A stretch of 64,000 nt of DNA from the sequence record PV764601.1. The stretch is one strand, 5' to 3'. Position 1 is the stretch's first letter; each line of letters starts with the position of its first letter. Below, piece by piece: positions 8,425-63,050 of the stretch. The position numbers were made by a program, and so were the translations under genes. Under the pieces are notes generated by a model that was not told the DNA's origin, ran no database searches, and was given only the letters and a program-made list of their open reading frames with translations.

Positions 8425-8814
8425 TTAGACCCTTACTAGACGGGAAATTTGTTGCTGGTCAAGACCGATGTTCTTGAGCCACTGCGTAACGTCAGCAGCG
8501 CTAGGAACGTTGACCCAATTACCAGCGACGAAGCCGAGGATGGGGTGGAGGGGATGGATGATGCCGTTGTACCTGCATAGCACCCACCACAGATACTCAG
8601 TACCGTACTTGTCATAGCTCATGATCTCCGGCGAAAACTCGTATTTCGGAGTAATCATTTCAGGAGTGCTGACAGGAATCTGTTTCGACAATCGGAACTG
8701 AGGATTGTTCATCGAGCTTGCCAGATAATCCAGCAGCTGCTCAGTCTCGCTACCCTTCACGTCCACAGGAACAGTCGTCACCGGGATATAGGTACGCTGC
8801 TTGTACTGGTTCAT
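8425..8814 (-). CDS. Baseplate protein gp53/LysM-like
   Basis: PEIMSYDKYGTEYLWWVLCRYNGIIHP matches the gp53/LysM-like pattern. Confidence 0.75.
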   Translation of the reverse strand: MNQYKQRTYIPVTTVPVDVKGSETEQLLDYLASSMNNPQFRLSKQIPVSTPEMITPKYEFSPEIMSYDKYGTEYLWWVLCRYNGIIHPLHPILGFVAGNWVNVPSAADVTQWLKNIGLDQQQISRLVRV

Positions 8815-8817
8815 GCG

Positions 8818-9882
8818 TTACCCTCCGATGAAATCTTGCATGTTGTTGCCAAACAGGTCAATCGAACCGAAGTTCTGAGACTGCTGGTTCTGCGCACGGC
8901 TAGGAGTGGGAGCACTGAGCATGAGGATGTTGGTCATTTCCTCTGCCGTAGGAATCTTGAACGTACTCACGTGAATGTTGATGGTTGCGAACATGGGCTT
9001 GCCACGTCCGTCCAACTGCCATTCGATAGTCGGACTAATGCTCTCAACCACCACACTCTCTAGGTGCAGGATGTTACCGATCTTCAACGCAATGTTGCCC
9101 TCCACTTCACGCACGGGCGAGCCAATGAATTCAGCACTCGCACCAAGCAGACTATTGGGACCGCCGGAAAGAACCTGCGTCAGGGACTGCTTATTGAGTC
9201 CACCCGAAGCAGCTTCCTTAGCGAAGTCCTTGAAGCCAGTGGAAATGTTGTTGAAGGTGTCACCAATGTTGTCAACTGCCCGATTCAGATTTGGGCGAGG
9301 ACCCGGGGCGCGGAGGAAGCCACTTTCAGTTTCAGAGGGGAGTGCCATACGGGCCAAGCTGTTGATGGTCTGCATGATTTCCTGCTCGCCATCGTACTGT
9401 GCTGCGATCACCAACGGAATGTCCACGGCGATACGGGTAGCGCCTTGCCAAATCTGTGCAGTCATATCTTTGGTAACCGACTGCACGCCGTTCAGACGTG
9501 CAATGGTTTCCAGAGTTGGACCGCCCATCATGCTCAGGAGGCCCTGAGCAAATGGTGCATCATAGCTACCACCAAAACTGAAGTTGAGCGTCTCCGCTCC
9601 ATACCAGCCGGAGACGATTAGGGGCTCGCCGTTATCCGTGTCCGCGCTCAAGATAACTTGATACGCGGCGTTCGGGGTGTAGGCTTGCTGCAATTCACTG
9701 CTCGCATTCTGATCTGCCAACTTGCGCTGCTCAAGTGGGCTACCACCAATACCGATGGATCGGTTGAGTGCTTCAGTAACAGACCCGTAAGCTTTGTTGA
9801 TCGCTCCCTTTGCAGTGTTGGTGGCGTAGTTGGCCACAGAAGTCGAGGCCGACTTTACAAAACCGCCGATAGAAAATCCCAT
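8818..9882 (-). CDS. Baseplate-tail tube junction protein (gp48-like)
   Basis: TAQIWQGATRIAVDIPL..LARMALP..LRAPGP and LKIGNILHLESVVVESI pattern; position after the tape measure. Confidence 0.55.
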   Translation of the reverse strand: MGFSIGGFVKSASTSVANYATNTAKGAINKAYGSVTEALNRSIGIGGSPLEQRKLADQNASSELQQAYTPNAAYQVILSADTDNGEPLIVSGWYGAETLNFSFGGSYDAPFAQGLLSMMGGPTLETIARLNGVQSVTKDMTAQIWQGATRIAVDIPLVIAAQYDGEQEIMQTINSLARMALPSETESGFLRAPGPRPNLNRAVDNIGDTFNNISTGFKDFAKEAASGGLNKQSLTQVLSGGPNSLLGASAEFIGSPVREVEGNIALKIGNILHLESVVVESISPTIEWQLDGRGKPMFATINIHVSTFKIPTAEEMTNILMLSAPTPSRAQNQQSQNFGSIDLFGNNMQDFIGG

Positions 9883-9890
9883 GTGTTACC

Positions 9891-12656
9891 TCAAGTGATG
9901 AGACCGCCATTGATGCCAACAAGCAGCATGTCATCAATGTAGCTGGAACTAAGACTAGGCATTTCGCCACGGTTGGAGGGGAACGGCGTTGCACTGAGGC
10001 CCATATCACGCTTCATCTGATTCCAGTCTTGCTGGGGCTGCACCGATTCCTTGGACTGGAACGGAGTAACCTCGTTAGGAATCTGCTGCATGGTGCCCTG
10101 ACCCATGAGCTTACTGGCTTCGTTGTAGTAGCCAGTACGATTACGGATACCCGAAGCACGGTACTTAGGATCGTTGATGCGCCACTTGATGTGATTCTCG
10201 CCAAGCATATCCATCGCCCGGTTAGAGCTGATGTTGTCACGCTTCAGGTACTCAAGAGTTGCCTGCTGATCCTTGGAGCCATTCGCCATTTCATCAACGG
10301 AGAACTGTGCCATTTCATCCAACGCTGCCTGACTTGGGATGATGCTGCCGTCGGAGTTGAGCATTCCCTTAGACTGCAAGCGAGCCATAAGTGCCTTGCC
10401 TCGGGAGCCCTGCCAACTCATGAAGCCAACGTTGGTTGCGCCATTAGCAGGATCGACGTGACTACCGAACACGTTCTTGCCAAGGAAGGCACCTTCGCGT
10501 CCAATCTCAGCCGTGTGGGCAAGTGCACCCTCATGAGAGAGGCCCGCTTTGCGGAAAGCTTGATACGTACCACTCATGAGATCACGCTGACCCTGCGAGA
10601 TAGAGAAGTTACCTGCACCGCTAGAAGCACGTGCAGAGTTCCACCCCGAAGTGTCATCGCCTCGCAAGAGCGCCCTTACTTCTGCGTCAAACGCGTCCTT
10701 GTCTACGGTGTACGTCCGATTTTTGTCATCCCAATACTTCTGCGCAACACGCACACGCGCAGCATATTCACGACGCTTAGGATCGGTGCTGTTGAAGTCG
10801 GCTTCTAGCTGCTGCGGAGTACGCATTGGCATAGCGAGCGGCATTTCATCGGAGCGAGTACCATCAGCACGTTCAGGACCACCGAGGTCTTCGGTATGGA
10901 ACATGGCCATAGCACCAGCCACCCAAGGGTTAGCACGTGCCAGAGTAGCGGCACGGCCTAGAAGACTACCACCTGCGCGCCAGCTGCCACGCATCAGCTT
11001 ACCTGCAAGCCAGCGTCCCGGACGCGTAAACAATGAAGCACCTGCGACAGTACCACCAACGACAGCAGCGTCCTTACCCGAAGCAAGGTCTTTGTCTTGA
11101 ATCGCGTCAGCTTCTGCACGGAGGGCGTCTGCTTCATCGTGCATACCTACCAAGTCGTAAGCGCTCGCCATCAATCCCTTAAAACCCTTGGTGATAGAGT
11201 TCATCACTCGGGGAGCGCGGTCGAAGTTCTCACGCACAGCCCACAGAGTTCCGAGGATACCACCAACACCAACGAGGCTCTTGAGCACGTTACCGACTTC
11301 GCTCAGAAGCTGCTTGGGGCCTGCGGCAGCGATAGCAGCGGCATTGCGGAATCCCGAGGGCATGCCGAAGTCATCGTCCCGGCTAGCCTTACGCTTACGA
11401 TCTAGTTCAGCGCGTCGGCGGTTACGCTCCTCTTGCTTGAACTGTTCGGACATGGTGTCTGCCAAGTCCTGACCAACGTTACCGATGTTGTCCAGACCGT
11501 TGAACAATTCCTTGTTGTCCTTCGGTTCAATGATGACGTGTTCTGGATCGTCAGGGGCTTCTGCGTCTTCGACCTTACGCTTAGAGCGCTTGGTTTCGAT
11601 GACTTCCTCGATCTTGTCGCCAATGACTTCGGAAATCTTTTCAGCCGCTTCGATTTCGCTCTGCGTGATCTTCTCATCGCGCTGGCGTGGGTTGGTAGTG
11701 GGAGAGTCCGGCGGAACGCCAGCGTCTTCCATCAACGCAACCTGCTCAGGGTCTTCCCAAGGCTTCGGGTAACCACGTGCTTGCCAGCTGCTAGGACGCC
11801 AGCCTCGCTTACTACGACGTCGGGGTGCAGAAGACGGTGCAGAGGGATGCTCAATGTCGGCAAGACTCTGGACAATAGGACCCGTCCAATTATCGAGAGC
11901 GGTGGCAGTGTCTGCTACTTCCGTCTCGTAGTCCGAGGCTGCGTAGTTATCCCCTCGATTGATGCGCCATTCTTCCACACGTTCACGCATAGACTGCGCT
12001 GTGTTTTCCATCTGAGCTTGTTCGGCCAACTGCTGTTGCTTCTCAGCGGCCTTTCGAGCACGTACTCGGATGTTGAACTTGGCCATGCGCATACGATCAC
12101 GCAGTTCCATCTGTCGAAGTCGATGCTGCTCTTCCGGGTCAAGGTCGCCTGCCAGCTGTTGTTGAATGGAAGCAGCTGCGGCCACACCGATAGGATCGGT
12201 CTCTTCCTGAGGTGCAGTGATTTTCAGATTGCGAATTGCGTGCTCACGTGCAGCGGCGTACTCCCGATCCTTCTTCATCTGCCACATGCGAAGGGCGTTA
12301 CCTGCTAGAGGACGCCCGTTCTTATCAAGCGGCGGAGATTCAGGAGGGCGTGCGCCAGTAGCCCTGATCTTGTCAAGGCGCATCTTGAGTGCAGCACCGA
12401 CAAGCGGGCGCCCGTTCTTACCTAGCAGTCGTGGGTCGATAGGGTGTGGAACCGGCTTGACGATTGCCTTCTTGTTCGCCTTGGCAGCACGCTTTGCGGC
12501 TTCGGTAGGCTTCTTCAACTGCGCCGATACCTTGATCTTGTCGTTGTTCAAGGCCCTACCGGCAGTCTTCGGGATGGCCTTTCGTACAGGCGGCTGATCC
12601 AGCAGCTTGGTTTTGACTTTGCCCTTGATGGGCTTGCTAGGAGGGCGCTTTGCCAT
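9891..12656 (-). CDS. Tape measure protein with C-terminal phage tail lysozyme domain
   Basis: 921 aa; coiled-coil and Ala/Gly-rich middle. C-terminal FRKAGLS..ALAHTAEIGRE..GFMSWQGSRGKAL resembles Phage_lysozyme2. Downstream of the chaperone gene. Confidence 0.75.
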   Translation of the reverse strand: MAKRPPSKPIKGKVKTKLLDQPPVRKAIPKTAGRALNNDKIKVSAQLKKPTEAAKRAAKANKKAIVKPVPHPIDPRLLGKNGRPLVGAALKMRLDKIRATGARPPESPPLDKNGRPLAGNALRMWQMKKDREYAAAREHAIRNLKITAPQEETDPIGVAAAASIQQQLAGDLDPEEQHRLRQMELRDRMRMAKFNIRVRARKAAEKQQQLAEQAQMENTAQSMRERVEEWRINRGDNYAASDYETEVADTATALDNWTGPIVQSLADIEHPSAPSSAPRRRSKRGWRPSSWQARGYPKPWEDPEQVALMEDAGVPPDSPTTNPRQRDEKITQSEIEAAEKISEVIGDKIEEVIETKRSKRKVEDAEAPDDPEHVIIEPKDNKELFNGLDNIGNVGQDLADTMSEQFKQEERNRRRAELDRKRKASRDDDFGMPSGFRNAAAIAAAGPKQLLSEVGNVLKSLVGVGGILGTLWAVRENFDRAPRVMNSITKGFKGLMASAYDLVGMHDEADALRAEADAIQDKDLASGKDAAVVGGTVAGASLFTRPGRWLAGKLMRGSWRAGGSLLGRAATLARANPWVAGAMAMFHTEDLGGPERADGTRSDEMPLAMPMRTPQQLEADFNSTDPKRREYAARVRVAQKYWDDKNRTYTVDKDAFDAEVRALLRGDDTSGWNSARASSGAGNFSISQGQRDLMSGTYQAFRKAGLSHEGALAHTAEIGREGAFLGKNVFGSHVDPANGATNVGFMSWQGSRGKALMARLQSKGMLNSDGSIIPSQAALDEMAQFSVDEMANGSKDQQATLEYLKRDNISSNRAMDMLGENHIKWRINDPKYRASGIRNRTGYYNEASKLMGQGTMQQIPNEVTPFQSKESVQPQQDWNQMKRDMGLSATPFPSNRGEMPSLSSSYIDDMLLVGINGGLIT

Positions 12657-21849: not shown

Positions 21850-21925
21850 TGGCGGACAAGGCAGGGGTCGAACCTGCGACGGCCGGATTAACAGTCCGGT
21901 GCTCTACCAGCTGAGCTACATGTCC
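21850..21925 (-). tRNA. trnN: tRNA-Asn (GTT), 76 nt, encoded CCA
   Basis: GGACATG TAGCTCAGCTGGTAGAGC A CCGGA CTGTTAA TCCGG CCGTC GCAGG TTCGACC CCTGC CTTGTCC G CCA: full cloverleaf with one U-U mismatch in the acceptor stem. Confidence 0.95.
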
Positions 21926-48165: not shown

Positions 48166-49116
48166 ATGAAAGGTCCGCGCAAAACAATCAACATGAAGCT
48201 GCATCACCTGTACGATTTCAGCGAGCTATACCAAGCTATCTACAATCGGAATGAAGGCTACAAGATGCAGGAGGCAAACGCCTTCGCGCACATTGCATTC
48301 CAAATGCACCCGCGCGCCACCTCCTTGCTGGAACTTCTCTCTGGCGCACACAGCAAGCATGCCGATTACTTCAAGAAAGCATGGCCTGCGCAGGGCCTCA
48401 AGTATTCGGGTACTGATGGCACTTTGTCCGCAGGCAACCCCAGTATCATCCAAGTGCGCGACATTACGCAGCACATTTTCAAACAGCAGTGGGACATTGT
48501 GACCGCCCACTACTACTCGCCGAGTTCCGTATGTGATATGGACAAGGGAGGCATCGTCACTCGCGCTGGCGTACAAGGCTTCATCAACGCGGCGTTCTCG
48601 GCCACCAAGAAAGGTGGTATCTTCATCATGGATTTCTGCTCGGATGGCTACGCCACCGCAATCTCCCCTGATGAGCGCATGAGCGGTAAGCCTTCCACCC
48701 AAGAATTCCATGTGGACTGCTATACTCCGCTGTACCGATGGCTGGTCAGCAAGAACCTCGCCAGCAACACTCGGTACTCTAGTGTGGTCGTAGTTGCACG
48801 CGTTACCTCGTACTACGATCGGACCACCTCCAACAACGTTGACGAATTCAGCAGCATTTCCATCAAGGTTGATGGGCGTGTGGTTGTATCCGTCAAGATC
48901 AAGAACCCCTTCTGTCAGCGCTACTTCTCTGAGCCAGAGTTGACGGACATGATGCACGATGCAGGCTTCGCACAGGTCGATGCGTGGCACTGCGACTATG
49001 ATGCCAACGATTTCGAGAATCTCGATCCCGTGCTCACATGGGACGCAGACGAAACGGACGATGAGGATTTGCTCGAAAGCATCAAGGCCAACGTACTCGT
49101 AGGTATCCGCAAATGA
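48166..49116 (+). CDS. Class I SAM-dependent methyltransferase
   Basis: SLLELLSG motif I, WDIVTAHY, KGGIFIMD and RYFSEPEL.DMM..AGF motifs. Confidence 0.8.
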   Translation: MKGPRKTINMKLHHLYDFSELYQAIYNRNEGYKMQEANAFAHIAFQMHPRATSLLELLSGAHSKHADYFKKAWPAQGLKYSGTDGTLSAGNPSIIQVRDITQHIFKQQWDIVTAHYYSPSSVCDMDKGGIVTRAGVQGFINAAFSATKKGGIFIMDFCSDGYATAISPDERMSGKPSTQEFHVDCYTPLYRWLVSKNLASNTRYSSVVVVARVTSYYDRTTSNNVDEFSSISIKVDGRVVVSVKIKNPFCQRYFSEPELTDMMHDAGFAQVDAWHCDYDANDFENLDPVLTWDADETDDEDLLESIKANVLVGIRK

Positions 49117-53038: not shown

Positions 53039-53761
53039 ATGTCGGAACAAACTGTGATTGTGTTCAAGCCTGCCCACCTAGTCTATGCAGCTATTGAGGC
53101 TGGCCTCGGACCGATGCACTACATGCAGGCCCTCGTAAAGATTGAGCCCATGCTGAAAAGTATCGGTGTGGAAATCAAGATGGAGGAGGTGGACGGCGGT
53201 GCACAGGGAGACCGTGAGGTCAATCAACTTGTAGACGCCATCAATGAGTACAAGGCAGATCAGCTGGCTAGGGCCGAGGCTGCCAAGGTTCCCTTTACCT
53301 GCGAGGAAATCTACGCCATCGAAAACTTCGATAAGGTTGAGCCGGCCATTTACGCTCTGCGTGGCTTCTACTTCAACCATCTAAAGGGTGGCCTAGACGT
53401 AGAACTCAGCGACTTCGATATGGAGGCGCTTCACAAAGACACCGAGATTGAAGTGCGCGTCATCAAGGAATTCTTCTTCGATCCGCGCCGCTTCTGGAGG
53501 CTGGCTTCCGTGTGGTTCAAGGGCGAGCCTGTCATGGTCATTCAGAACGCCGGGCGCGAAGGTGACGACCACGCCAAGCGGTTCATCACGAATCGGGAAG
53601 CATTCGATGCTCTCTGCAAGCACCTGAACAGTTTCATTCAGCGCACGCCTTGGGACTCTGCTTCCATCGAAACAGACACCGTTGACGAAACTGCACACCT
53701 CGGTATGACCCTCACTGAATTCTATGGAAATGAACTGAATGGACACTTCGAGCGATACTAA
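53039..53761 (+). CDS. Hypothetical phage protein
   Basis: AAGGAG RBS; WRLASVWFKGEPVMVIQNAGREGDDH motif. Confidence 0.7.
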   Translation: MSEQTVIVFKPAHLVYAAIEAGLGPMHYMQALVKIEPMLKSIGVEIKMEEVDGGAQGDREVNQLVDAINEYKADQLARAEAAKVPFTCEEIYAIENFDKVEPAIYALRGFYFNHLKGGLDVELSDFDMEALHKDTEIEVRVIKEFFFDPRRFWRLASVWFKGEPVMVIQNAGREGDDHAKRFITNREAFDALCKHLNSFIQRTPWDSASIETDTVDETAHLGMTLTEFYGNELNGHFERY

Positions 53762-54572
53762 GATTCCGTTCAAGCTGTACGACTTGAACGACGTTCGCCA
53801 CATCAATGCGGAGCACTTCCCGCTGGATGATGACGACTACTGCTGGACAGTAGAAATGACGCCGCACCTTCTGTACGGTTTGGCCGACAGGGCACAGGCG
53901 CACCCTATGGGGTTCGTTGGCACGGAGGACGAACCCGAATGGATTTGGGAAGTCAGCGGTCGCCGCGCCGTGCTGCCTGTTGGTGGCCTGCACGTTTCCA
54001 AGACTACCGAGCAGTTCATTCGCAAGCAGGGTTGGGGCTACCAACTGAACGTCGGCTTCGACAAGGTGATCCACCACTGCGCTACGATTGAGCGCCCGGA
54101 AGACAAGGAAGAAGATGCAGACGAATACACGCAATGGCTCGACACTCCTACCCAGCGTTCGTACAAGGCCCTGCACTATGGCAAGGAGCGCAAGGCATAC
54201 TCGGTCACCGTGCTTAATACACAAGGCGAAATCGTAGGCGGTCTGTTCGGTCTGAACTTCCCCACCTACATTAGCGTCGATAGCATGTTCTCCCTAACTC
54301 CGAACGCATCCAAGGCTGCAATGGTTGCGCTGGACTTGTGGGCCGGTCAGGCTGGTAAGCGCCTTGTCGATATGGAAACGTTTGCCCCACACCTCGGTGC
54401 CCTTGGCGCTATGGATATGGATGGCCTGCACTTCCGCGATTGGGTTGAGCGCATCAAGAAGGACGCCGCTGCGAATGCCTCTGGGTTCAACCTCCCTTTG
54501 TTTGATGGCATTCAGGCCCTTGACGCCACGCAAGTATTCAACCACGCACGTTACCTGAGAACGAAGAAATGA
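53739..54572 (+). CDS. aat: Leucyl/phenylalanyl-tRNA-protein transferase homolog
   Basis: RRAVL..LHVSK, FDKVIHHCA, EIVGGLFG, SMFS..NASKAA, LVD..HL.ALGA align with the Aat motifs. Confidence 0.9.
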   Translation: MDTSSDTKIPFKLYDLNDVRHINAEHFPLDDDDYCWTVEMTPHLLYGLADRAQAHPMGFVGTEDEPEWIWEVSGRRAVLPVGGLHVSKTTEQFIRKQGWGYQLNVGFDKVIHHCATIERPEDKEEDADEYTQWLDTPTQRSYKALHYGKERKAYSVTVLNTQGEIVGGLFGLNFPTYISVDSMFSLTPNASKAAMVALDLWAGQAGKRLVDMETFAPHLGALGAMDMDGLHFRDWVERIKKDAAANASGFNLPLFDGIQALDATQVFNHARYLRTKK

Positions 54573-56206
54573 ATTACGGACTGCGCGAGTTTCGCACTGA
54601 TCGGGTGTTCGGCGAGCAGCATGTTGTCGCACCCACCGCTGACGTTGTGAAGCTCATCCCGAAGGCAAAGTTTGAGCAGTATCTGCATCGGGTCAAAGCA
54701 CTTGATGGTGTGGGCATCTTTGGTGACTTGCTGCCCACCTACGATGAATACATTTCGGTACTGCTGGCAAACTTTGTGCATCAAAGCGTGCTGGTGGTTA
54801 CGAATGTGTATGACCTGAACACCGGGCAGATGGTAGGCCACACGATCCTGCACGATCTGTGGAACACCCGCGATCCTCTCAAGCAGGCCAAGTTTGACCT
54901 GTTCGGTGCGAGCTACTTTGAAGTCAGCGTCCCACCGGCGCTGCCAGAGTTTCTGGATGACGTGTTTGAGCAGCTGCCGCCGTGCATGATCGTCAACTAC
55001 TTCCCGATCTACCCGCGTGAGTATGGTTATCAGGATGACAAATCCTATGGACTCTACATCCCCGAGTCGATGGAAAGCTACGTTGCCTCCCTGTCGAAGA
55101 AGAATCGGGAGAACTATCGTGCGGTGATGCGACTGAACGAAGGCATTCGGGTGGAGCAGGTTAGCCTGCGCGACGTGATGAAGTCTGCTGACTTCCACAA
55201 GAACTACACCGCCAACCTTGAGCGGTGGACCTACACCTCGGATGATAACGTCACCAACATCATCCACATCAACAACATGCTGCATAACCTTGAGGACCGT
55301 AATGCACTGGTCCTCAATATCTATGACGCAGACAACCGCCTCATCTGCACCAACATCGGTGAAGTGCGTGGCGCTGTGTACGTGGACAAGCTGGCTGTGC
55401 CGGGTGTAAGCTACGAAGAGTACAAGAAGCGGCGCATCGGCTTCCTCGCCATCTACGAGGCGATCCGATTCATCGTGGAAGAACTGCCGTTCGACGTGAA
55501 GTATTACCACCTCGACACCGAGGGTACGTACAAGGAAAAGTTCATCCCGGTAGGCTTTGAACTGCCCATCGTTCCCCTCGACTACGCCGTGGTGGACTCG
55601 GACTTCTGCGCAGGCAACTACTGCGCTGAGTACGGCTTTGAACCTCCGGTATACATCCGTGGTAAGGGATGGGAGTTGAAGAAGCTGGACAGCAAGTGGA
55701 ACGATCAGATCGACGTGTCGGAGATCAAGCTGGCTGAATTCCTCAAGCTGACTTCTGAACTGTTCGGGGAAGATGACCTCAACACCTTCGACCTTGAGAC
55801 GATCAATCAGCTGTCGCATATCCTGATGACGGCGCGTGAGGGCGGAAGTGTTCGGATTCTTGTCGCAAGGTGGCGTTATCGGAACCCCATCGGCTACATT
55901 GTTTTCAACCAATTTAATCCGAACGCCTATATCGACCTTGTGTACGTCACTGAGCAGATGCGTGGCCACGGTGTCGGTAGGCAGATGATGCAAAAGGCGT
56001 TCGCGCTGCTGTCGAATGAATTTGACGGCGTTGCCCTGCACACTTCGGTTACCAACGACCCTGCCAAGCGCCTGTATCGTGCCCTCGGGTTTGAGCAGAG
56101 CCTGCCTGTCGTAGGCTACTACGATGACAAGACAGATTCGTTTGGTAATGACCTTGATAGCACGGACGCATTCTACTACTACAAGAGGTTGAAGCATGAA
56201 GATTGA
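54569..56206 (+). CDS. Two-domain GNAT protein (FemABX/Acetyltransf_6-like plus C-terminal classical GNAT)
   Basis: SMESYVASLSKKNRENYR; C-terminal LVYVTEQMRGHGVGRQMM..NDPAKRLYRALGF. Confidence 0.8.
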   Translation: MNYGLREFRTDRVFGEQHVVAPTADVVKLIPKAKFEQYLHRVKALDGVGIFGDLLPTYDEYISVLLANFVHQSVLVVTNVYDLNTGQMVGHTILHDLWNTRDPLKQAKFDLFGASYFEVSVPPALPEFLDDVFEQLPPCMIVNYFPIYPREYGYQDDKSYGLYIPESMESYVASLSKKNRENYRAVMRLNEGIRVEQVSLRDVMKSADFHKNYTANLERWTYTSDDNVTNIIHINNMLHNLEDRNALVLNIYDADNRLICTNIGEVRGAVYVDKLAVPGVSYEEYKKRRIGFLAIYEAIRFIVEELPFDVKYYHLDTEGTYKEKFIPVGFELPIVPLDYAVVDSDFCAGNYCAEYGFEPPVYIRGKGWELKKLDSKWNDQIDVSEIKLAEFLKLTSELFGEDDLNTFDLETINQLSHILMTAREGGSVRILVARWRYRNPIGYIVFNQFNPNAYIDLVYVTEQMRGHGVGRQMMQKAFALLSNEFDGVALHTSVTNDPAKRLYRALGFEQSLPVVGYYDDKTDSFGNDLDSTDAFYYYKRLKHED

Positions 56207-57071
56207 GATTCATTCCCAAACTGAGAACGACGCATCCTCGCAACTGAGTCCGAATTCCAAGAGCCTGCCTGAACTGGTCAACGCGCTGTCCTATCTGGCA
56301 TCGCTGGACGGCAACTACACGCTGCAAGGTGTGCCGAGTTCGTGGGCTCCACTGCTGACCTACCTGCGCTTCGCTATCGGCAGCACCACGGTCGAACTGC
56401 AAGGCGATGAGATTGTTGGTCCTGCATGGCAGGCAGCAGACTACGGCCGCAACATGACCGAAGTTGTGTTGGAAGCCATGTGTGCCATCCGCCCTGAAAC
56501 CTCCATCGTGCTGCGTCTGCTGGATTCGGAAACGCCCATCCCGCAGTCGCGCAGGGGCTACGAGTTCGCCGAGCCCGAGCACGATTTCGTGTCTAACCCT
56601 GTGATGGCAGAGCGTCGTGCCAAGGTCATCGGTATCGAAGCTGCTAGGGAACTGTACGCTCCCACGCGACCGCACGTGCTGGTTGTTCCAAATAATCCTG
56701 AAATCATCGAGTTGACTCAGAACCTCCTGACCCAACTCGGTATTCGTGACAAGTGGTATCTGCTGATCCTCGACGGCGCTGCTGGTATCGTGCCGGAAGA
56801 CCTGAGTAATCTGCTACCGGACCAGCATTACTCTGTGTGGGATGACACCTATAAACAAATGTGGAACATCCGAGACTACTTCTCGCGTACCTTCCACACT
56901 GCGGTGGTGTCTTACGTCAAGGGCGCACAGGTTACGGCAGTGGAATACGGCGTCAGCTACAGCACGTTCAGAGGCTCCCTGTTCCATGCGCGTACTGACC
57001 GCGACCTGACTCACCCCGAAAGTATTCTCAAGCTGCGCCATGCACTGCTAAATAACACCGCAAAGGAATAA
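56196..57071 (+). CDS. Hypothetical protein, possible DUF5591/ArcS-like C-terminal domain
   Basis: VLVVP...LLILDGAAGIVPEDL..LLP.QHY resembles the DUF5591 G-V-V-P-x-E-L...P...H-Y pattern (by-eye match only). Confidence 0.45.
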   Translation: MKIEIHSQTENDASSQLSPNSKSLPELVNALSYLASLDGNYTLQGVPSSWAPLLTYLRFAIGSTTVELQGDEIVGPAWQAADYGRNMTEVVLEAMCAIRPETSIVLRLLDSETPIPQSRRGYEFAEPEHDFVSNPVMAERRAKVIGIEAARELYAPTRPHVLVVPNNPEIIELTQNLLTQLGIRDKWYLLILDGAAGIVPEDLSNLLPDQHYSVWDDTYKQMWNIRDYFSRTFHTAVVSYVKGAQVTAVEYGVSYSTFRGSLFHARTDRDLTHPESILKLRHALLNNTAKE

Positions 57072-57073
57072 CC

Positions 57074-58117
57074 ATGCACGTAATGACTGCCGAGCATTAC
57101 ATTGAACGTTTCGGATGTTCAAATTCGATCTACCCTGAGCTAGATAAGGACGTGCAAGCACAGTGGGTAAAGCTCCGCAGAAAGCTTGCACCTTCCTATG
57201 CGGACAAGCCGCTGTACGTGAGCACGGACGGCTCAATCGCTGTTGAGTCTTACCCGGACGGAACCCTGTACGCAGGGTTCACCAACATGGGGATGGCAAC
57301 CGGCTTCATGTTAGGTACGGTCGATCAAATCAAGAACACCTTGATCGACCTGTCTCAATCCATCCCAACCTTTGAGCAGGATAATGCAGTTGTCGCACCT
57401 CCTGCCCTTGACTGCCCACATAGATACGGCGAAGACTTCCCCCGGGAAATCTACTCGCTCAAGTCAGACGTGGTGTATCTCGGGTATCGTGATCGCGCCG
57501 GAGTCATGACGTGGGATGAATATCTCACGTCCCTGTCCACTAAGCGTAGGGCACAAGTACGGCAGAAGCTGCGCGTATCCGAGCACCTCACGTTTGAGGT
57601 CGAGCCCTTGTTCGACTATGAGATTCCAGTCATCGCCGAGTGGATGCAGGAACATTGGAGTGCGCAGACAGCGGAGACGTGCTCGACGTGGCATCCGCTG
57701 GTAGTGGAAGGTTCGCTGTTACCGCTGGCAATGTCGGTGGCTGCTGGTTCAGGGTGCGATACCATCAAGGTTTACGATGGCTTGCGCCTTGTGGCAGTCG
57801 GTACGTTCGTGAAGCGCGTCAATCGTCGCGTCTTCGTTGGCTTCTTCAAGGACTCGACCTACGATGCTCCGAATGGGTTGGGTACTGCGGTGCTGGCGCA
57901 TGCTGTGCAGTATTACCTACAGCGGCCGGAGACGGGGACCGCCATCATTGATACCACATTGGCTGCTGACTTTGTGGAAGGGCACACCTACAGTCAGTAC
58001 AAGCGTCCCGTGTGTAATGACACGATGACGTATGCAGGTATCGCAATCTGTTCGGCCACCCCCAAAGAGAAAATGTGGCCTCCCTACTACCAAGCAGGAG
58101 CATGGGTTTATGAGTAA
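57074..58117 (+). CDS. FemABX/Acetyltransf_6-like GNAT protein
   Basis: TWDEYLTSLSTKRRAQVRQKLR, GLGTAVLAHAV, YSQYKR. Confidence 0.7.
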   Translation: MHVMTAEHYIERFGCSNSIYPELDKDVQAQWVKLRRKLAPSYADKPLYVSTDGSIAVESYPDGTLYAGFTNMGMATGFMLGTVDQIKNTLIDLSQSIPTFEQDNAVVAPPALDCPHRYGEDFPREIYSLKSDVVYLGYRDRAGVMTWDEYLTSLSTKRRAQVRQKLRVSEHLTFEVEPLFDYEIPVIAEWMQEHWSAQTAETCSTWHPLVVEGSLLPLAMSVAAGSGCDTIKVYDGLRLVAVGTFVKRVNRRVFVGFFKDSTYDAPNGLGTAVLAHAVQYYLQRPETGTAIIDTTLAADFVEGHTYSQYKRPVCNDTMTYAGIAICSATPKEKMWPPYYQAGAWVYE

Positions 58118-58904
58118 CGTTCGCGCAGCCTTCGAGAAGTACCGTGTATACCGCGAGGTTCTGGCGCGCAATAAGGGCCTACCCTTCAAGCCGGTCGCTG
58201 CACCGAATGGCTTTACCGTTGAGGAGGTCCATACCGAGGACGCAGGGGCCATCCTTGTTCCTATGGGCGACACTGAGTTCCCTGCCTTCTACGATGAGGT
58301 TCTGAACTTGTCGGACAATCTGGCGCACACGATGCGTCCAGAGGTTCGTGTTATTGCAAGCCGTCCCAGCTTTGAGGCGCACCTGCAATCGCTGTCGCAG
58401 TTGAAGCGCAGCTGGAAGAACACGGCCCACCTCATGTTCCATCCCGCGCGTGGTGGAGAGTTTGACCAGTTCAAGGCTGGACTCATCCACATCATCGTCT
58501 CGAACCTGCAACACTTCAATCCGGGCATGACGTTTGAAGGTGCGACAGAAACGGCGGTGGCATACCTTGAGTACATCGCTGCATGGTCGCTGATTCCCAA
58601 CAGTGACGTGGTGCTGGTTTTCCGTCCTAGCGAGGATGGCAAGTTCACCCCATGCGGCATTGGCATGTTCCAAATGTGCCCAGAGAACGATGAGTATCAC
58701 TGGGTCAACACGTTGCTCCTGCGTGACCAATACGCCAAGGAGTACACCATCGGGAACGTAATGCTCCTGCAAGCCCTGCGCCTGTGCTACAAGGCGAACG
58801 TGCTGTATCTCAACCTCGGCCTCGCCGTCTTCGACTACAAGAAGACGTGGAAGCCCATTCCTTTTGAGCGCAAGGTTCCGGTCTTGCTCGACCCCACGGA
58901 GTAA
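58110..58904 (+). CDS. FemABX/Acetyltransf_6-like GNAT protein
   Basis: ATG 58110 after AGGAG; SFEAHLQSLSQLKR, IGNVMLLQAL..YLNLGLAVFDYKKTW. Confidence 0.75.
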   Translation: MSNVRAAFEKYRVYREVLARNKGLPFKPVAAPNGFTVEEVHTEDAGAILVPMGDTEFPAFYDEVLNLSDNLAHTMRPEVRVIASRPSFEAHLQSLSQLKRSWKNTAHLMFHPARGGEFDQFKAGLIHIIVSNLQHFNPGMTFEGATETAVAYLEYIAAWSLIPNSDVVLVFRPSEDGKFTPCGIGMFQMCPENDEYHWVNTLLLRDQYAKEYTIGNVMLLQALRLCYKANVLYLNLGLAVFDYKKTWKPIPFERKVPVLLDPTE

Positions 58905-58909
58905 CCCAC

Positions 58910-60433
58910 ATGTGTTCCATTTTCGGTGTCCATAACCTGCGTTGGTCTGACGCACAGCAGAAGCGCGTCGTCTTCAACGCACTGATGACGCTGGCTGTTG
59001 AAAGTTGCGAGCGTGGCCGTGATGCAATGGGCTACGCTGCCTTCATCACGTCGCTTGATGGCACCACGCATCGCGTGTTCCAGCGTCAGTCTTTCCGTTC
59101 GATTCGGGATACTCATCCTGACCTCAATGCACGTGCACTGGCTGTAATCAGTCAGGTGCAGATCATGATGCGCAACCTCGACGCCATGACTCCGAACGAG
59201 GTGAGAAGTTTCACCCTGATCGCAAACTGCCGAGCCGAGCCGACTACTGAATGGCTACAGGACCAGCGCGAGGATGACATTCAGCCCTACGCCAACTGGC
59301 CCTCTGAACGCTATTTCGCTGTGCATAACGGCGTCATCGCCAACGATGCGCAATTCATCCCGGAACATTCCCGCACCAAGGTGGATAGCGCTGCGATTCC
59401 CTACGCGATTGAGCGTGGTGAGTTTGAAAGCCTGATCGGTTCTGTTGCGTCAGCGGTCTACGACGTGGAGACTGATACGCTGTGGCTCGCCCGCAACTAT
59501 CGGCCCCTCTCCGCTGTGTGCCCTAGCTTTGGCTTCCATGAAAACGGCGCTGCGGTAGTATTCGCCAGTGAGCGGCAGGCCATTACGCGTGCACTGTTTC
59601 GTGACGGCATGTATACCGATTACCCAATCGCCGCCAACTCGACTTGGAAGTTCAACGGCCACATCGACCGGAACTCTTTCTTCGTAGGCAAGGCGGCAAC
59701 CACTCGCTTCGACAAGGACCCGAACGGCGGCAACCCTGAGAGCGCCATCGTGATCCTGTCCGGTGGTATGGACAGCACGGTTAGTGCAGAAATCGCATGC
59801 CGGGATCACACCAACATCGTGCTCGCTCACTTCCATTATGGTTGCCGGGCACAGACGCGCGAGACGGAGGCAGTGACGGCTATTCATGCTGCACTGGTTG
59901 AGCGTCATCCTCGGAAGACGATCACCCTCAAGTTCTTCGACCTCGACTTCCTCAAGCAGCTGGGTGGCAACCCGCTGGTGGACGACACGATGGAAGTGGC
60001 AACCGGCAAGGACGGCATCGAGTACGCGAATGAATGGGTGCCGTTCCGTAATGGCCTGATGGTCGCCATGATGGCAGCGTATGCTGATCGGTGGAGCTTC
60101 GGTGCAATCTACACCGGCGCCAATCTTGAAGAAGCAGGTGCTTTCGGGGACAATGAAAAGGAATTCTTCGACCTGATGGAGAAGGCAATCGCCATTGGCT
60201 CCAAGGCCGCTCCGAAGTTGGTCAACCCTCTGGACAAGCTGATGAAGCATGAGGTGGCACAGACGGGTCTGATGCTGGAAGCGCCAATTCACCTTAGCTG
60301 GAGTTGCTACCACGGCGGTGAGCTTCATTGCGGAAACTGTGGGCCATGCCAGCTGAGGCGAACCGCGTTTGCCATGATTGGTAAGGACGATCCTGTAAAG
60401 TATATGCAGGACGCGCCGCTAGTAGGACTGTGA
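58910..60433 (+). CDS. queC: Gat-QueC: class II glutamine amidotransferase fused to 7-cyano-7-deazaguanine synthase-like domain
   Basis: N-terminal MCSIFG, RGRD, NCRAEPT, VHNGVIAN, VDS; PP-loop SGGMDS, VPFRN, SWSCY..HCGNCGPCQLR Zn motif. Confidence 0.9.
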   Translation: MCSIFGVHNLRWSDAQQKRVVFNALMTLAVESCERGRDAMGYAAFITSLDGTTHRVFQRQSFRSIRDTHPDLNARALAVISQVQIMMRNLDAMTPNEVRSFTLIANCRAEPTTEWLQDQREDDIQPYANWPSERYFAVHNGVIANDAQFIPEHSRTKVDSAAIPYAIERGEFESLIGSVASAVYDVETDTLWLARNYRPLSAVCPSFGFHENGAAVVFASERQAITRALFRDGMYTDYPIAANSTWKFNGHIDRNSFFVGKAATTRFDKDPNGGNPESAIVILSGGMDSTVSAEIACRDHTNIVLAHFHYGCRAQTRETEAVTAIHAALVERHPRKTITLKFFDLDFLKQLGGNPLVDDTMEVATGKDGIEYANEWVPFRNGLMVAMMAAYADRWSFGAIYTGANLEEAGAFGDNEKEFFDLMEKAIAIGSKAAPKLVNPLDKLMKHEVAQTGLMLEAPIHLSWSCYHGGELHCGNCGPCQLRRTAFAMIGKDDPVKYMQDAPLVGL

Positions 60434-61038
60434 TGAAAGCACTGATTGTAATGGCCCACCCGGATGACAGTTTCATTTTCGGCCACAACATCCGGCAGGC
60501 CACGCCTCATATCGAGTGGCACGATCTATGTGCCACTTACGGTCATCGCACTGCACGCGGCAAGGAATTCCTTGCCGCCTGTAAGGTGTTGAAATCGAGG
60601 GGTATCCAGCTTGCGTTGGACGACGATTACCAAGGCACGCTGACCGAGGACACTGCGCTGCTGGTGGAGAACATCTATCAGCAGTTGCACAATGGGTACA
60701 ACTACCTCGTAACGCACAACCCGAACGGTGAGTATGGCCACCGCCATCATCGGGAACTACACAAGCACACCATGCTCGCGTGGTCGATGCTGCCAGTCAA
60801 GGAGCGCCCATCCGTGCTGGTGCCTGCATTCAACTACAAGGTGCCGGACTTCACGCTCTACAGCGAAACCAAAGCCAAGAGCAAGTGCCTGCAAATCTAC
60901 GAGCGCGAAATGTATATGATCGGCAACTTCGATCTGATTGCAGAGTCGTTCGTGTTGCATGAAAAGGGAGAGCGCGGACCGTCGCTTCATGTTGAGGTAA
61001 CTCGCAGCCTCCACCACCGAAAGTTCAAAGAGGATTGA
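60433..61038 (+). CDS. PIG-L/LmbE-family deacetylase
   Basis: AHPDD and THNPNGEYGHRHH motifs; TGATG coupling. Confidence 0.9.
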   Translation: MKALIVMAHPDDSFIFGHNIRQATPHIEWHDLCATYGHRTARGKEFLAACKVLKSRGIQLALDDDYQGTLTEDTALLVENIYQQLHNGYNYLVTHNPNGEYGHRHHRELHKHTMLAWSMLPVKERPSVLVPAFNYKVPDFTLYSETKAKSKCLQIYEREMYMIGNFDLIAESFVLHEKGERGPSLHVEVTRSLHHRKFKED

Positions 61039-61040
61039 AA

Positions 61041-62144
61041 GTGAAGAAGATCATTGTAGTTCGCAGTCCTGAGTCGGACTTCCGCCCTGAGAAGTGGATC
61101 ACTAACAAGGTGATCGCCGCCCTCCGCCAAACCGCAGCAGACAAGACTCGGACCCTCAACGGTCATGAGTTTGAAGTCGTTGAGGTGAACAGCGGCGAAG
61201 AATTCAACAGCATGTCGTCGCAGTCCATGTTCTATTCCGACGAGACGATGACCAAATCGTTCTGCAAGGGTGTGCTGGGTGTGCTGGATCACATCGCTGA
61301 TGGCGACGTGGTTTACTTTGCCGATGGTTGGTCGCCTGCCGTTCCGGTGCTCAAGTTCCACATGCACTGCGCAGGCATCAAGGCCCACCTGACCGGCTTC
61401 TTCCATAGCAGCGTTGAGACTCCGGGTGACTTCCTGTATTCGGCAGGCTCGTGGGTACGCAGCCTCGAAGAAACCCTGCTGGATTGTTTCACCGAAACCT
61501 ACGTAGCTACCGATTATGGAGTGGACCTACTAAACTCCACCAACGTCAACGTCATTGGCCTGCCGGTCATTAGCCCACAAGATACCAACCCTGCGCAGCT
61601 GCGCCGTTCGCTGACTGCGCGTGCTGAAGAGGCAAAGCCTGTCGTGGGCTGGAGCCATCGTTGGGCAGAGGATAAGCGCCCCGAAGACTTCATCGAACTG
61701 GCCCATCGTCTTGGCGACACCCGCACCTTCCGCGTTCTGCACCCGGTTCCCCTCGACACCGCACCGCTGTATCAGGAAGCGGTGGATGCAGGTATTGAGT
61801 TCGTCCTATGTGATACCAAGGACAAGTATTGGACCGAGGTGGCGAAACTGAGTTTCCTGTTTAGCTCTGCAACGCTGGAGACTTTCGGTTACAGCGTTAT
61901 TGATGCAGTGGTCCTAGGCGCGATTCCGGTAGTGCCCAACCGCGCGTGCTACCCATACATGTACCGCGACGAGCACCTGTACTACACGCTGGAAGATGCA
62001 GCCCAACTCCTGAGTAAGGATTGGGTACGCCACACTCTGTTCGACGTGTTGAGGGCCCCAGTGTTCGTGCAGGTCAACGCATTTGAGCACACGATTACCA
62101 CTCGCCTGACTAAGTTGCTCGACAACGACCGCTACCCGAACTAA
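61041..62144 (+). CDS. GT-B glycosyltransferase (GT4-like)
   Basis: HRWAEDKRP and ETFGYSVIDAV..GAIPVVP..YP donor-binding motifs; GTG start after GAGGA (alternative TTG 61035). Confidence 0.9.
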   Translation: MKKIIVVRSPESDFRPEKWITNKVIAALRQTAADKTRTLNGHEFEVVEVNSGEEFNSMSSQSMFYSDETMTKSFCKGVLGVLDHIADGDVVYFADGWSPAVPVLKFHMHCAGIKAHLTGFFHSSVETPGDFLYSAGSWVRSLEETLLDCFTETYVATDYGVDLLNSTNVNVIGLPVISPQDTNPAQLRRSLTARAEEAKPVVGWSHRWAEDKRPEDFIELAHRLGDTRTFRVLHPVPLDTAPLYQEAVDAGIEFVLCDTKDKYWTEVAKLSFLFSSATLETFGYSVIDAVVLGAIPVVPNRACYPYMYRDEHLYYTLEDAAQLLSKDWVRHTLFDVLRAPVFVQVNAFEHTITTRLTKLLDNDRYPN

Positions 62145-62147
62145 GCA

Positions 62148-62996
62148 ATGGCTCGCATTGGAATTGTAGGGGGCCTTGGCGTGGGTAAAGCTCACGCCAT
62201 CGCTGCCTTGAATCTCGGACATACGCTGTCCTTTGTCGTAGACGTGGACCCCAAGGCTAGTGAAGTCTACAGCAGATCGGTGCTGGTTAATCAATGGGGT
62301 TCGTTCTATGAAGAAGCTGTGCTGGAGCGTCAGGTTCCAGTATACAAAACACTGACTGGCGCAATGATGAGTACGTGGAATGCTCCGGACCTCATTATCA
62401 TCGCCACGCCAGATAGCACTCATGACCTGTTAGTGAGGCAAGCGGTACAATGCTTCCCTGAGTCTCGCGTGCTGTGTGAGAAGCCGTATAAGTCAGACGT
62501 GATTGATGATCGTGTGCTTGTTTCCGCCGAATGGATTTACCATTCCAAGCTGGCAGGCGTGCACGACCCCATCACGGCGCTGGCTATGTACCACAACAAC
62601 ATGCCTACCGATGGTTCTCCGTGGAACCACGTAATCAAGTACGACCTAGGCTTCCACCTGATGAGCATCATCGGATGGCAGCGTGGCTTCGACGTGGCTG
62701 CAAAGGTAGATCATGCTGCAACCACTCCAGTAAATTGGGGTGGTGAAGTTCAAGTGCTAGGGTTCGATGATGTGATCGAAGTAGCCGCAATGTACAATCC
62801 GAATGCAGCAGGCGTAACAGAGTTGATAGGTGCGCCCCTGATAGAGGATGCGGAAATAATCGTCCGTCATGGCGATACCACTACGTACTTGGATTGGGAA
62901 GCCCCGTTGTTTGAACGGCAGATTTCCTCAGTCCTACGTGGCGTGCACCCGGTCACTAGCAAGGTGGCTGTGGGCATCGACTTCAAACTAGGCTGA
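62148..62996 (+). CDS. Gfo/Idh/MocA-family NAD(P)-dependent oxidoreductase
   Basis: RIGIVGGLGVGKAH, IATPDSTH, VLCEKP. Confidence 0.85.
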   Translation: MARIGIVGGLGVGKAHAIAALNLGHTLSFVVDVDPKASEVYSRSVLVNQWGSFYEEAVLERQVPVYKTLTGAMMSTWNAPDLIIIATPDSTHDLLVRQAVQCFPESRVLCEKPYKSDVIDDRVLVSAEWIYHSKLAGVHDPITALAMYHNNMPTDGSPWNHVIKYDLGFHLMSIIGWQRGFDVAAKVDHAATTPVNWGGEVQVLGFDDVIEVAAMYNPNAAGVTELIGAPLIEDAEIIVRHGDTTTYLDWEAPLFERQISSVLRGVHPVTSKVAVGIDFKLG

Positions 62997-63000
62997 ATTT

Positions 63001-63035
63001 AGGGGCTGCCGGGAGCGATCTTGGTGGCCCCTTTT
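63001..63035 (+). terminator. Terminator closing the operon
   Basis: aggggctgcc...ggtggcccc followed by TTTT. Confidence 0.7.
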
Positions 63036-63050
63036 CGTTTCCCGAATGGG

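Follow-up and report, generated by a model that had tools for sequence, protein, structure and literature searches.

We analysed a stretch of 64,000 nucleotides (nt; in the following called the window), identical in sequence to bases 62001-126000 of Xanthomonas phage PhiXhv-12 (PV764601.1), with a focus on a gene that encodes a Gat-QueC protein, on the run of transferase genes in which it lies, and on the genes elsewhere in the phage genome with which it probably cooperates. PhiXhv-12 is a virulent jumbo myovirus of 227,648 bp infecting X. hortorum pv. vitians. There are four near-identical genomes (PhiXhv-15, PhiXhv-16, Ep026 and Ep032), and contigs from public sequencing runs show that waste water and fresh water commonly contain relatives of the phage.

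The open reading frame (ORF) at 58910-60433 of the window is, by its sequence, a genuine and intact Gat-QueC. Pfam assigns a QueC domain (E 2.3e-49, amino acids (aa) 279-490) and a GATase_7 domain (1.5e-08, aa 118-226), and the N-terminus MCSIFG provides Cys2. Together with the PP-loop SGGMDS and the four cysteines of the zinc motif, this confirms a first-pass annotation of the window, which had described an intact amidotransferase with Cys2 fused to a QueC with PP-loop and zinc motif. Residues C2, G36, D38, N106, R108, H139, N140 and G141 are invariant in the glutaminase domains of the subclade to which the protein belongs. The Gat-QueC of Nonagvirus (9g-type) phages is 33% identical across 99% of the length (phmmer 1.7e-70), and the family motifs YGCRA, WVPxRN and (Y/F)xDN are common to both enzymes.

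The protein scored below the cut-offs of other classes with related domains. For canonical QueC, TIGR00364 gave 131.6 bits (cut-off 150.3) and PRK11106 gave 55.6 (cut-off 378), and the canonical motifs YxQxHxxE and YPDC read YGCRA and FGDN. The QatC/Cap9 model NF041925 gave 31.6 bits against a cut-off of 280, covering aa 468-500 only, and no genes for QatA, QatB, QatD, a CD-NTase or Cap10 were found among the neighbours, which are transferases. The model for B-type asparagine synthetases, TIGR01536, reached 16 bits (cut-off 267). We rejected an identity as GlmS because the two SIS domains that GlmS needs are absent and QueC makes up the C-terminal half; the product name in GenBank, ‘L-glutamine-D-fructose-6-phosphate aminotransferase’, is a misnomer derived from PHROG 10428. 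No second QueC, QueF or QueF-L was found in the PhiXhv-12 genome, leaving Gat-QueC as its sole QueC homologue.

Gat-QueC lies within a tightly packed run of genes (Table 1). From 53739 to 62996 the genes overlap or are at most 6 nt apart, and a terminator-like hairpin follows at 63001. A scan for sigma-70 promoters was uninformative (2 sites, 9 expected). Further upstream, a hypothetical protein of 316 aa is encoded at 48166-49116 of the window, homologues of which (family F7) occur inside the Gat-QueC clusters of two metagenomic loci (L016 and L098), so that the functional unit in PhiXhv-12 may extend further in this direction. In metagenomic variants of the region (about 96-97% identical; from waste water and other samples), 36 bases at 60396-60433 are replaced by 755 others. 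The replacement falls where the 3′ end of Gat-QueC meets the start of the PIG-L gene, which suggests an inserted small gene.

Table 1 Features of PhiXhv-12 in and outside the window. Positions refer to the window unless the record (PV764601.1) is named; L-numbers denote loci compared in the text.
Feature	Position	Strand	Remarks
240-aa protein, PHROG 8664	53039-53761	+	precedes the tight run and overlaps the Aat-like gene; kept only in the closest metagenomic relative, L012
Aat-family Leu/Phe-tRNA-protein-transferase-like protein, GNAT fold	53739-54572	+	Pfam Leu_Phe_trans 2.2e-29; TIGR00667 8.6e-22, below cut-off
Acetyltransf_6/FemAB-like N-terminal part with C-terminal GNAT	54569-56206	+	Acetyltransf_1 2.4e-14, Acetyltransf_6 1.9e-05; hhalign 95.9% to the Acetyltransf_6 protein of L013
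291-aa protein	56196-57071	+	no match in Pfam, NCBIfam or PHROG; no hhalign link
FemAB/Acetyltransf_6-like protein, 347 aa	57074-58117	+	look-alikes 72% Acetyltransf_6 (language model); hhalign 96.6% to family F10, 77.5% to the Acetyltransf_6 protein of L013
FemAB/Acetyltransf_6-like protein, 264 aa	58110-58904	+	kept beside the subclade Gat-QueC in L012, L013, L017 and L018
Gat-QueC	58910-60433	+	ATG-started ORF, 507 aa; class-II glutaminase (about aa 1-230) and QueC PP-loop ATPase (aa 277-490)
PP-loop SGGMDS (aa 284-289)	59759-59776	+	sequence motif
WVPFRNG (VPxRN motif; contains F379 and G382)	60035-60055	+	motif definition from PMC13329287
FGDN (aa 412-415; contains G413)	60143-60154	+	counterpart of canonical YPDC and of YPDN in other Gat-QueCs
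Four-Cys zinc motif C-x7-C-x2-C-x2-C, C466/C474/C477/C480 (aa 466-480)	60305-60349	+	sequence motif
PIG-L/LmbE deacetylase (BshB/MshB-like)	60430-61038	+	Pfam PIG-L 3.5e-07; start overlaps the Gat-QueC stop; kept in L012, L013, L017 and L018
GT4-type (GT-B fold) retaining glycosyltransferase, EX7E-type motif	61041-62144	+	AlphaFold2 model and family conservation
Gfo/Idh/MocA NAD(P) oxidoreductase	62148-62996	+	Pfam 3.2e-09; kept in L012, L013, L015, L018, L046 and L067
Terminator-like hairpin, 14-bp stem and T-run	63001-63042	+	closes the gene run
FolE	record 8706-9386		Pfam GTP_cyclohydroI 1.3e-27
QueE-like radical-SAM protein	record 11391-12290		phmmer 2.8e-08 against Nonagvirus QueE
QueD	record 211088-211546		Pfam PTPS 1.9e-16
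TGT-like protein XYR92962.1, 568 aa	record 216554-218260 (L005:16554-18260)	-	annotated ‘hypothetical protein’; outside the window

Whole-genome searches with phmmer, hmmsearch and hhalign found no homologues of folE, queD, queE or of a gene for a tRNA-guanine transglycosylase (TGT) or DpdA within the 64-kb window, bearing out what had been said from the sequence before. Matches lie only at 8.7, 11.4, 211 and 216.5 kb of the record. A tblastn search with the QueE-like protein matched about 200 phage QueE genes; the annotation of its own gene as ‘GTP 3′,8-cyclase’ is another PHROG-derived misnomer. Judged by gene content, the core set of FolE, QueD, QueE, (Gat-)QueC and a transglycosylase is complete and dispersed across the 227-kb genome. 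Among the explanations first offered for the missing partners, their presence elsewhere in the genome was the correct one, as FolE, the QueE-like protein, QueD and a TGT-fold transglycosylase are all encoded outside the window; the use of 7-carboxy-7-deazaguanine (CDG) from the host is unnecessary, since the phage encodes FolE, QueD and the QueE-like protein itself. The first-pass annotation had also proposed to search the full genome for que and dpd genes and had held that a full set elsewhere, together with plain deoxyarchaeosine (dG+) in the DNA, would make this a known pathway. Such a set, with the TGT-like protein as the putative DpdA, is what we found, and with it the genomic half of that statement.

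The transglycosylase was the most difficult member of the set to recognise. DpdA is the signature protein of phage 7-deazaguanine DNA modification (PMC10516641). BLAST and phmmer searches seeded with DpdA1, the DpdA of phage Ps15 and DpdA4 (HVTV1_69) found nothing in the PhiXhv-12 genome, and the DpdA PHROGs 887 and 7068 were unmatched by 40 hypothetical proteins of the phage. Pfam hmmscan proved unfit for detecting DpdA: the DpdA1 of phage ChristophMerian, used as a control, was unmatched at E 0.05. We built a DpdA1 profile from 61 loci in the viral contig database IMG/VR. Used as a hidden Markov model (HMM), it gave a marginal match only (E 0.12). In an hhalign comparison against the full set of 382 PhiXhv-12 ORFs of at least 150 aa, XYR92962.1 alone stood out (75.5% as a single sequence), with DSGGFQ, HxLGI and DSSS aligned. 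When its family was compared profile against profile, the values were 89.7% for DpdA1 and 95.9% for the annotated DpdA of Stenotrophomonas phage Ps15.

XYR92962.1 matches a single Pfam family, TGT. Among solved structures its best relative is archaeosine TGT (ArcTGT), with which it also shares the CxCxxC zinc motif. With a profile built from 25 homologues, 39 matches were obtained in the PDB, which were TGTs only (best: ArcTGT, 9.6e-10), and the top 50 PDB matches of an AlphaFold2 model were tRNA-guanine transglycosylases in 50 out of 50 cases. DSGGxQ, D304 and the zinc site C348/C350/C353/H377 are invariant in the family, and six homologues carry a precomputed PF01702 assignment. The protein combines an N-terminal extension and the TGT-type zinc site with a long, lysine-rich C-terminal tail. 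Homologues were found by tblastn in Vibrio phages GR11A and GR7B, in nine P. putida jumbo phages and in phages NCTB, BCSR5 and Motura; they bear names such as ‘TGT domain-containing protein’ (GR11A, GR7B) or ‘tRNA guanine transglycosylase’. The gene has similarly annotated neighbours in PhiXhv-12, GR11A and Illi-2, namely genes for a peptidase, a sigma factor and RecA/UvsX. The same tblastn search gave no match to phages nt-1, CP220 and phiST, and the regions around the QueE genes of nt-1 (DpdA2) and of CP220 and phiST (DpdA3) contained no recognisable DpdA. By BLAST, phmmer and PHROG, XYR92962.1 is unassignable to DpdA1-4, the seeds for BLAST and phmmer having been DpdA1, Ps15 DpdA and DpdA4. 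Taken by sequence and predicted fold, XYR92962.1 is most likely a divergent transglycosylase of the TGT/DpdA family that places deazaguanine into phage DNA, and its family may represent a further DpdA subfamily.

To place the FGDN motif we aligned the PhiXhv-12 protein with 120 database homologues and the Nonagvirus Gat-QueC; FGDN also aligned with the YPDC of the solved QueC structures 2pg3 and 3bl5. All 122 Gat-QueCs have D-N at the YPDC position (YPDN in 90, YGDN in 15, FGDN in 6, FPDN in 6 and other xxDN in 5), and YPDC itself appeared in the alignment only in one plain viral QueC. The canonical YxQxH is likewise replaced by YGCRA throughout the family. The motif had been singled out as altered, which holds against canonical QueC; as an oddity of this protein it does not stand, since D-N is common to 122/122 Gat-QueCs including those of the 9g type. 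Phenylalanine takes the place of the tyrosine in 14 of the 122 (6 FGDN, 6 FPDN, 1 FADN and 1 FCDN). It would be tolerable there, because the QueC mutant Y131F keeps partial activity (PMC13329287).

The PhiXhv-12 enzyme belongs to a clade of 24 sequences (support 0.76), which bit scores separate from the rest (at least 340 inside, at most 295 outside). Only three positions distinguish the clade from the 97 other Gat-QueCs: F379 and G382, both in the VPxRN motif, where Ala and Leu are found elsewhere, and G413, where the others have the Pro of the YPDN motif. The change from Pro to Gly at 413 occurs in 21 of the 24 members. The deviation seen in FGDN is thus mostly a trait of the Gat-QueC family, and only the Pro-to-Gly change, F379 and G382 mark the subclade. 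The VPxRN and YPDC motifs have been assigned to the ATP/substrate pocket of QueC (PMC13329287), and the three clade-specific pocket substitutions would fit either a slightly different substrate or product or a docking to partner enzymes. IMG/VR contained no member of this subclade; the best match was 35% identical.

For nine subclade homologues (38-65% identity) we retrieved the contigs by exact-protein look-up and clustered their genes into families; all loci compared here other than those of cultured phages are metagenomic contigs. At 10/10 subclade loci, Gat-QueC lies within a long co-directional cluster together with a glycosyltransferase and several FemAB-like paralogues. The glycosyltransferase is GT4-like in six loci and GT2-like in five, with both types in L017. 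The GT4-like family was found at six of the ten subclade loci compared with four of 80 other Gat-QueC loci (Fisher p 6e-05). L012, L013, L017 and L018 again contain genes for PIG-L and the 264-aa FemAB-like protein, and all of these but L017 also have the oxidoreductase gene. Other subclade loci have additional genes for ATP-grasp ligases, methyltransferases and lysine aminomutases. The first-pass annotation was right to stress the neighbouring genes, as these remain linked to the Gat-QueC subclade and to DpdA in distant phages.

Several of these clusters also join the tailoring genes to the deazaguanine pathway. L018 has the order FolE, TGT-like, oxidoreductase, PIG-L, one gene, FemAB-like, glycosyltransferase, Gat-QueC, and in L017 one small ORF separates Gat-QueC from an intein-containing TGT-like gene. 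A QueE-like gene is found inside the clusters of L013 and L098, and related Gat-QueCs are placed between FolE and DpdA in L018, L046, L053 and L104. The longest contig of the TGT-like protein P0145 and that of the Gat-QueC P0003 are both 109,629 bp long, and therefore the two probably lie on one contig. DpdA1 was not found within 10 kb in the five subclade loci scanned (L012-L017) and is present at 61/80 IMG/VR Gat-QueC loci.

Some further genes at these loci are worth recording. The TGT-like gene beside the subclade Gat-QueC of L017 and a nearby helicase gene (L017:11661-14666 and L017:15074-18067) each contain an intein with a LAGLIDADG endonuclease. Radical-SAM genes resembling lysine 2,3-aminomutase occur in related Gat-QueC clusters (L100:14840-18347 and L016:19057-20262), and L100 also has B12-dependent lysine/ornithine aminomutase subunits. 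These aminomutase genes hint that some variants of the modification use building blocks of the beta-lysine type. In Stenotrophomonas phage Ps15, an annotated myo-inositol-1-phosphate synthase (L011:6268-7518) lies between FolE and QueC/DpdA/QueE, a hint at cyclitol or sugar chemistry attached to deazaguanine pathways.

The glycosyltransferase next to the PIG-L gene belongs to family GT367. Its AlphaFold2 model (mean predicted local distance difference test score, pLDDT, 88) has a GT-B fold with BshA, GlgM, MshA and other retaining GT4 enzymes as best PDB matches. In the family, the EX7E-type motif and an Arg/Lys pair are conserved, with R207, K212 and E280 invariant. We considered the GT367 protein as the missing DpdA and rejected this because of the GT-B fold. 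A hydroxymethyl-pyrimidine as its acceptor is unlikely as well, since PhiXhv-12 has a normal-looking thymidylate synthase (Pfam 4.5e-97) and a dihydrofolate reductase.

We searched the 2.9 million viral contigs of IMG/VR with a peptide pattern taken from this glycosyltransferase family only and obtained 22 loci (L104-L125). At all 22 the GT4-like family lies within a deazaguanine cluster. In 20 of them the same strand carries a DpdA1-like or TGT-like gene, which lies within 2.5 kb in 18 and directly abuts the glycosyltransferase gene in 13; at the remaining two the contig ends beside the glycosyltransferase gene. Clustering the genes of the 22 loci into families gave FolE in 15, QueE in 12, QueD in 11, Gat-QueC in 4 and FemAB-like proteins in none. 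The pairing extends to cultured phages. In BCSR5, genes for GT-like, TGT-like, QueE and FolE proteins lie within 6 kb. Phage PA5oct encodes the TGT-like gp168 (family HMM 7e-10, hhalign 96%), the GT-like gp167 and the QueE gp162, and its DNA resists several restriction enzymes, at sites that contain G, which its authors read as modified G (PMC12191111). The GT4-like family is a companion of DpdA. Most of the 22 loci have FolE, QueD and QueE without a detectable QueC, so that bases at the level of CDG may be involved there.

From the gene content, the fold assignments and the conserved linkage, we think it rather probable that Gat-QueC is responsible for the QueC/G+ step in a dispersed phage DNA-modification pathway and that the operon around it decorates the deazaguanine further. 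FolE, QueD and the QueE-like protein would make CDG. The glutaminase domain of Gat-QueC would supply ammonia to the QueC PP-loop domain, and the enzyme, using glutamine and ATP, would convert CDG via preQ0 to the level of archaeosine (G+), a conversion demonstrated for the enzyme of phage 9g. The TGT-like enzyme would then swap the deazaguanine for guanine in phage DNA, the hypermodified form of which would be shielded from host nucleases. For the subsequent steps we predict that the GT4 enzyme glycosylates the deazaguanine, probably with N-acetylglucosamine (GlcNAc), that the PIG-L deacetylase removes the N-acetyl group from the transferred sugar, and that the freed amine is acylated or aminoacylated by the FemAB- and Aat-like transferases, whose folds suggest aminoacyl-tRNA donors. 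The analysis shows the identities of the genes, their conserved catalytic motifs, the complete genomic set and the conserved linkage, whereas we infer the target, DNA rather than tRNA, as well as the order of the steps and all chemistry beyond G+; DNA is favoured because the glycosyltransferase family adjoins DpdA1 and because of the PA5oct data. It is a tentative proposal only that guanine in PhiXhv-12 and scattered uncultured relatives is replaced by a 7-deazaguanine with an aminoacylated amino sugar, built by GT4 (GlcNAc), PIG-L and the FemAB-/Aat-like enzymes and possibly capped by the GNAT domain.

The same logic of GlcNAc transfer, deacetylation and N-acylation is followed by the pathways of mycothiol (MshA-MshB-MshC-MshD), bacillithiol (BshA-BshB-BshC) and aminoglycosides (GlcNAc transferase with an LmbE-type deacetylase). 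The PhiXhv-12 operon resembles them in logic and is not a member: it has no MshC or BshC ligase, its presumed acylating enzymes are FemAB- and Aat-like, and the acceptor would presumably be a deazaguanine instead of inositol or malate. PA5oct (Wroclawvirus; PMC12191111) resembles the PhiXhv-12 module in having the TGT-like gp168, the GT367-family gp167 and the QueE gp162 close together, whereas no subclade Gat-QueC, PIG-L or FemAB-like genes were found in the 12.7 kb inspected and the glycosyltransferases are only about 24% identical.

Several observations weigh against such an elaborate pathway. The Gat-QueC operon is about 95-110 kb away from the other que genes of PhiXhv-12. For two proteins of the run, the FemAB-like identity comes from language-model look-alikes and hhalign only. 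PIG-L and FemAB-like genes are absent from most of the IMG/VR loci with a glycosyltransferase-DpdA pair, and QueC from many, so that the elaborate part of the model rests on about ten loci. The TGT-like protein is about as similar to tRNA enzymes as to DpdA1. The publication on PhiXhv-12 mentions neither queuosine genes nor DNA modification, and none of the eight 7-deazaguanine derivatives of which we are aware has an obvious site for O-glycosylation.

The closest known system is that of 9g, Nonagvirus and the Queuovirinae, which produces dG+ (PMC6884629, PMC10516641) and has the same Gat-QueC architecture and motifs and the same set of FolE, QueD, QueE and a TGT-superfamily enzyme. The 9g-type Gat-QueC and DpdA put dG+ into DNA in E. 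coli, even in a queC deletion strain (PMC6884629). The two systems differ in that the 9g genes form one cluster, whereas those of PhiXhv-12 are scattered over 227 kb; the PhiXhv-12 transglycosylase (568 aa) could not be matched to DpdA1-4, its Gat-QueC falls into a separate subclade, and the surrounding cluster of GT4, PIG-L, Gfo/Idh/MocA and FemAB-like genes is absent from 9g. PhiXhv-12 could nevertheless run an ordinary dG+ or dPreQ0 pathway as in 9g, its sugar and acyl transferases being unrelated and acting, for example, on the host envelope or on virion proteins. This is the alternative that survives best, and we regard it as unlikely. The genomic set is complete, all family motifs are those of the validated 9g-type enzyme, and jumbo-phage genes are generally densely packed. 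A pathway ending at plain dG+ among unrelated neighbours is contradicted, however, by the conservation of the linkage: the adjacency is kept in all ten subclade loci with identities down to 38%, and the glycosyltransferase family sits in deazaguanine clusters at 22 of 22 independent viral loci, abutting DpdA in 13. The three subclade-specific substitutions within the substrate-pocket motifs, whose roles are taken from PMC13329287, also speak against it.

Compared with canonical QueC (TIGR00364; 3BL5, 2PG3), the PhiXhv-12 protein shares the PP-loop, VPxRN and zinc motifs, and presumably CDG as the substrate and ATP-dependent amidation and dehydration, and it differs in its N-terminal class-II glutaminase domain. 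The protein deazaguanylases QatC of Qat systems and Cap9 of type IV cyclic-oligonucleotide-based antiphage signalling systems (CBASS) (PMC13329287, PMC13279940, bioRxiv 10.1101/2025.04.06.647259) resemble it in the QueC fold and the ATP-dependent activation of the CDG carboxylate; the PhiXhv-12 Gat-QueC, by contrast, is a phage gene product in which a glutaminase domain supplies ammonia rather than a protein supplying an amine. QatC, Cap9 and WbpG-like sugar amidotransferases (PMC13329287) are precedents for a repurposed enzyme, in which the QueC domain would adenylate a carboxylate that is not CDG but, for instance, that of a sugar acid, amino acid or peptide produced by the operon, and would amidate it with ammonia from glutamine, while CDG would be left to the host QueC or inserted as such. 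F379, G382 and G413 do alter the substrate-pocket motifs VPxRN and YPDC, Gat-QueC lies apart from folE, queD and queE while being part of a tailoring operon, and many glycosyltransferase-DpdA loci lack a nearby QueC. We still consider repurposing quite improbable, because the genome, which invests in making CDG, encodes no QueC homologue apart from Gat-QueC and because related Gat-QueCs lie between FolE and DpdA (L018, L046, L053, L104). The best matches of the enzyme are without exception QueC or Gat-QueC proteins, its family motifs are all kept, and Pfam found no uronic-acid-forming enzyme in the operon; the suggestion, made from the window alone, of a shift toward a sugar acid or peptide is thus not supported.

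We likewise give little credence to a target other than DNA, be it tRNA (the phage tRNA-Asn or the host GUN tRNAs) bearing a glycosylated queuosine-like nucleoside, or a free deazapurine glycoside. What speaks for it is that the TGT-like protein keeps the zinc site of tRNA TGTs and has tRNA enzymes as its best solved relatives, that the sole phage tRNA belongs to the queuosine family, that tRNA-queuosine mannosyltransferases are among the low-ranked language-model look-alikes of the glycosyltransferase, and that a pterin glucosyltransferase is among its fold matches. The glycosyltransferase family, on the other hand, abuts DpdA1-type genes, and the DpdA1 of 9g acts on DNA (PMC6884629); PA5oct, with its TGT-like/glycosyltransferase pair, has restriction-resistant DNA; and the TGT-like protein has a long lysine-rich tail and is surrounded, in PhiXhv-12, GR11A and Illi-2, by genes of replication and recombination.

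Outside the pathway, a few other features of the genome may be noted. The sole tRNA of PhiXhv-12 is a tRNA-Asn(GTT) at 21850-21925 of the window on the minus strand. It is among the four tRNA species whose position 34 is normally queuosine, which could be a coincidence or may bear on the TGT-like enzyme. Of two proteins encoded outside the window (L005:7275-8132 and L005:9437-10558), one contains a Tad3 domain (Thoeris inhibitor, 4.4e-27) and one a NADAR domain, and among the 40 hypothetical proteins scanned there were matches to the anti-CBASS protein Acb1 (1.1e-16) and to an ADP-ribosyltransferase exoenzyme (2e-08). All four are candidates for counter-defence.

Modification of DNA with 7-deazaguanines is a main route by which phages evade restriction enzymes and CRISPR, and sensors for it have arisen in hosts. 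To our knowledge, none of the eight known 7-deazaguanine derivatives bears a sugar or an amino acid. In the literature that we searched, we found no description of a glycosylated deazaguanine, of the glycosyltransferase-DpdA gene pair or of the cluster reported here. The existing annotation of PhiXhv-12, a phage of broad host range that is considered for the biocontrol of lettuce leaf spot, hid a complete deazaguanine gene set, and the misleading GlmS-type name of its Gat-QueC can now be corrected. Taking the tailoring cluster, the divergent transglycosylase and the DpdA-linked glycosyltransferase family together, we predict a new hypermodified 7-deazaguanine. If it carries the aminoacylated amino sugar proposed above, it would be the first glycosylated purine and would involve the first aminoacyl-tRNA-dependent step in any DNA modification, and the GT367 family would be a general, previously unnoticed partner of DpdA. 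The DpdA-linked glycosyltransferase family and the occurrence of the Gat-QueC subclade in sugar and aminoacyl tailoring clusters suggest a layer of purine hypermodification not explored so far, in a phage that can be cultivated.

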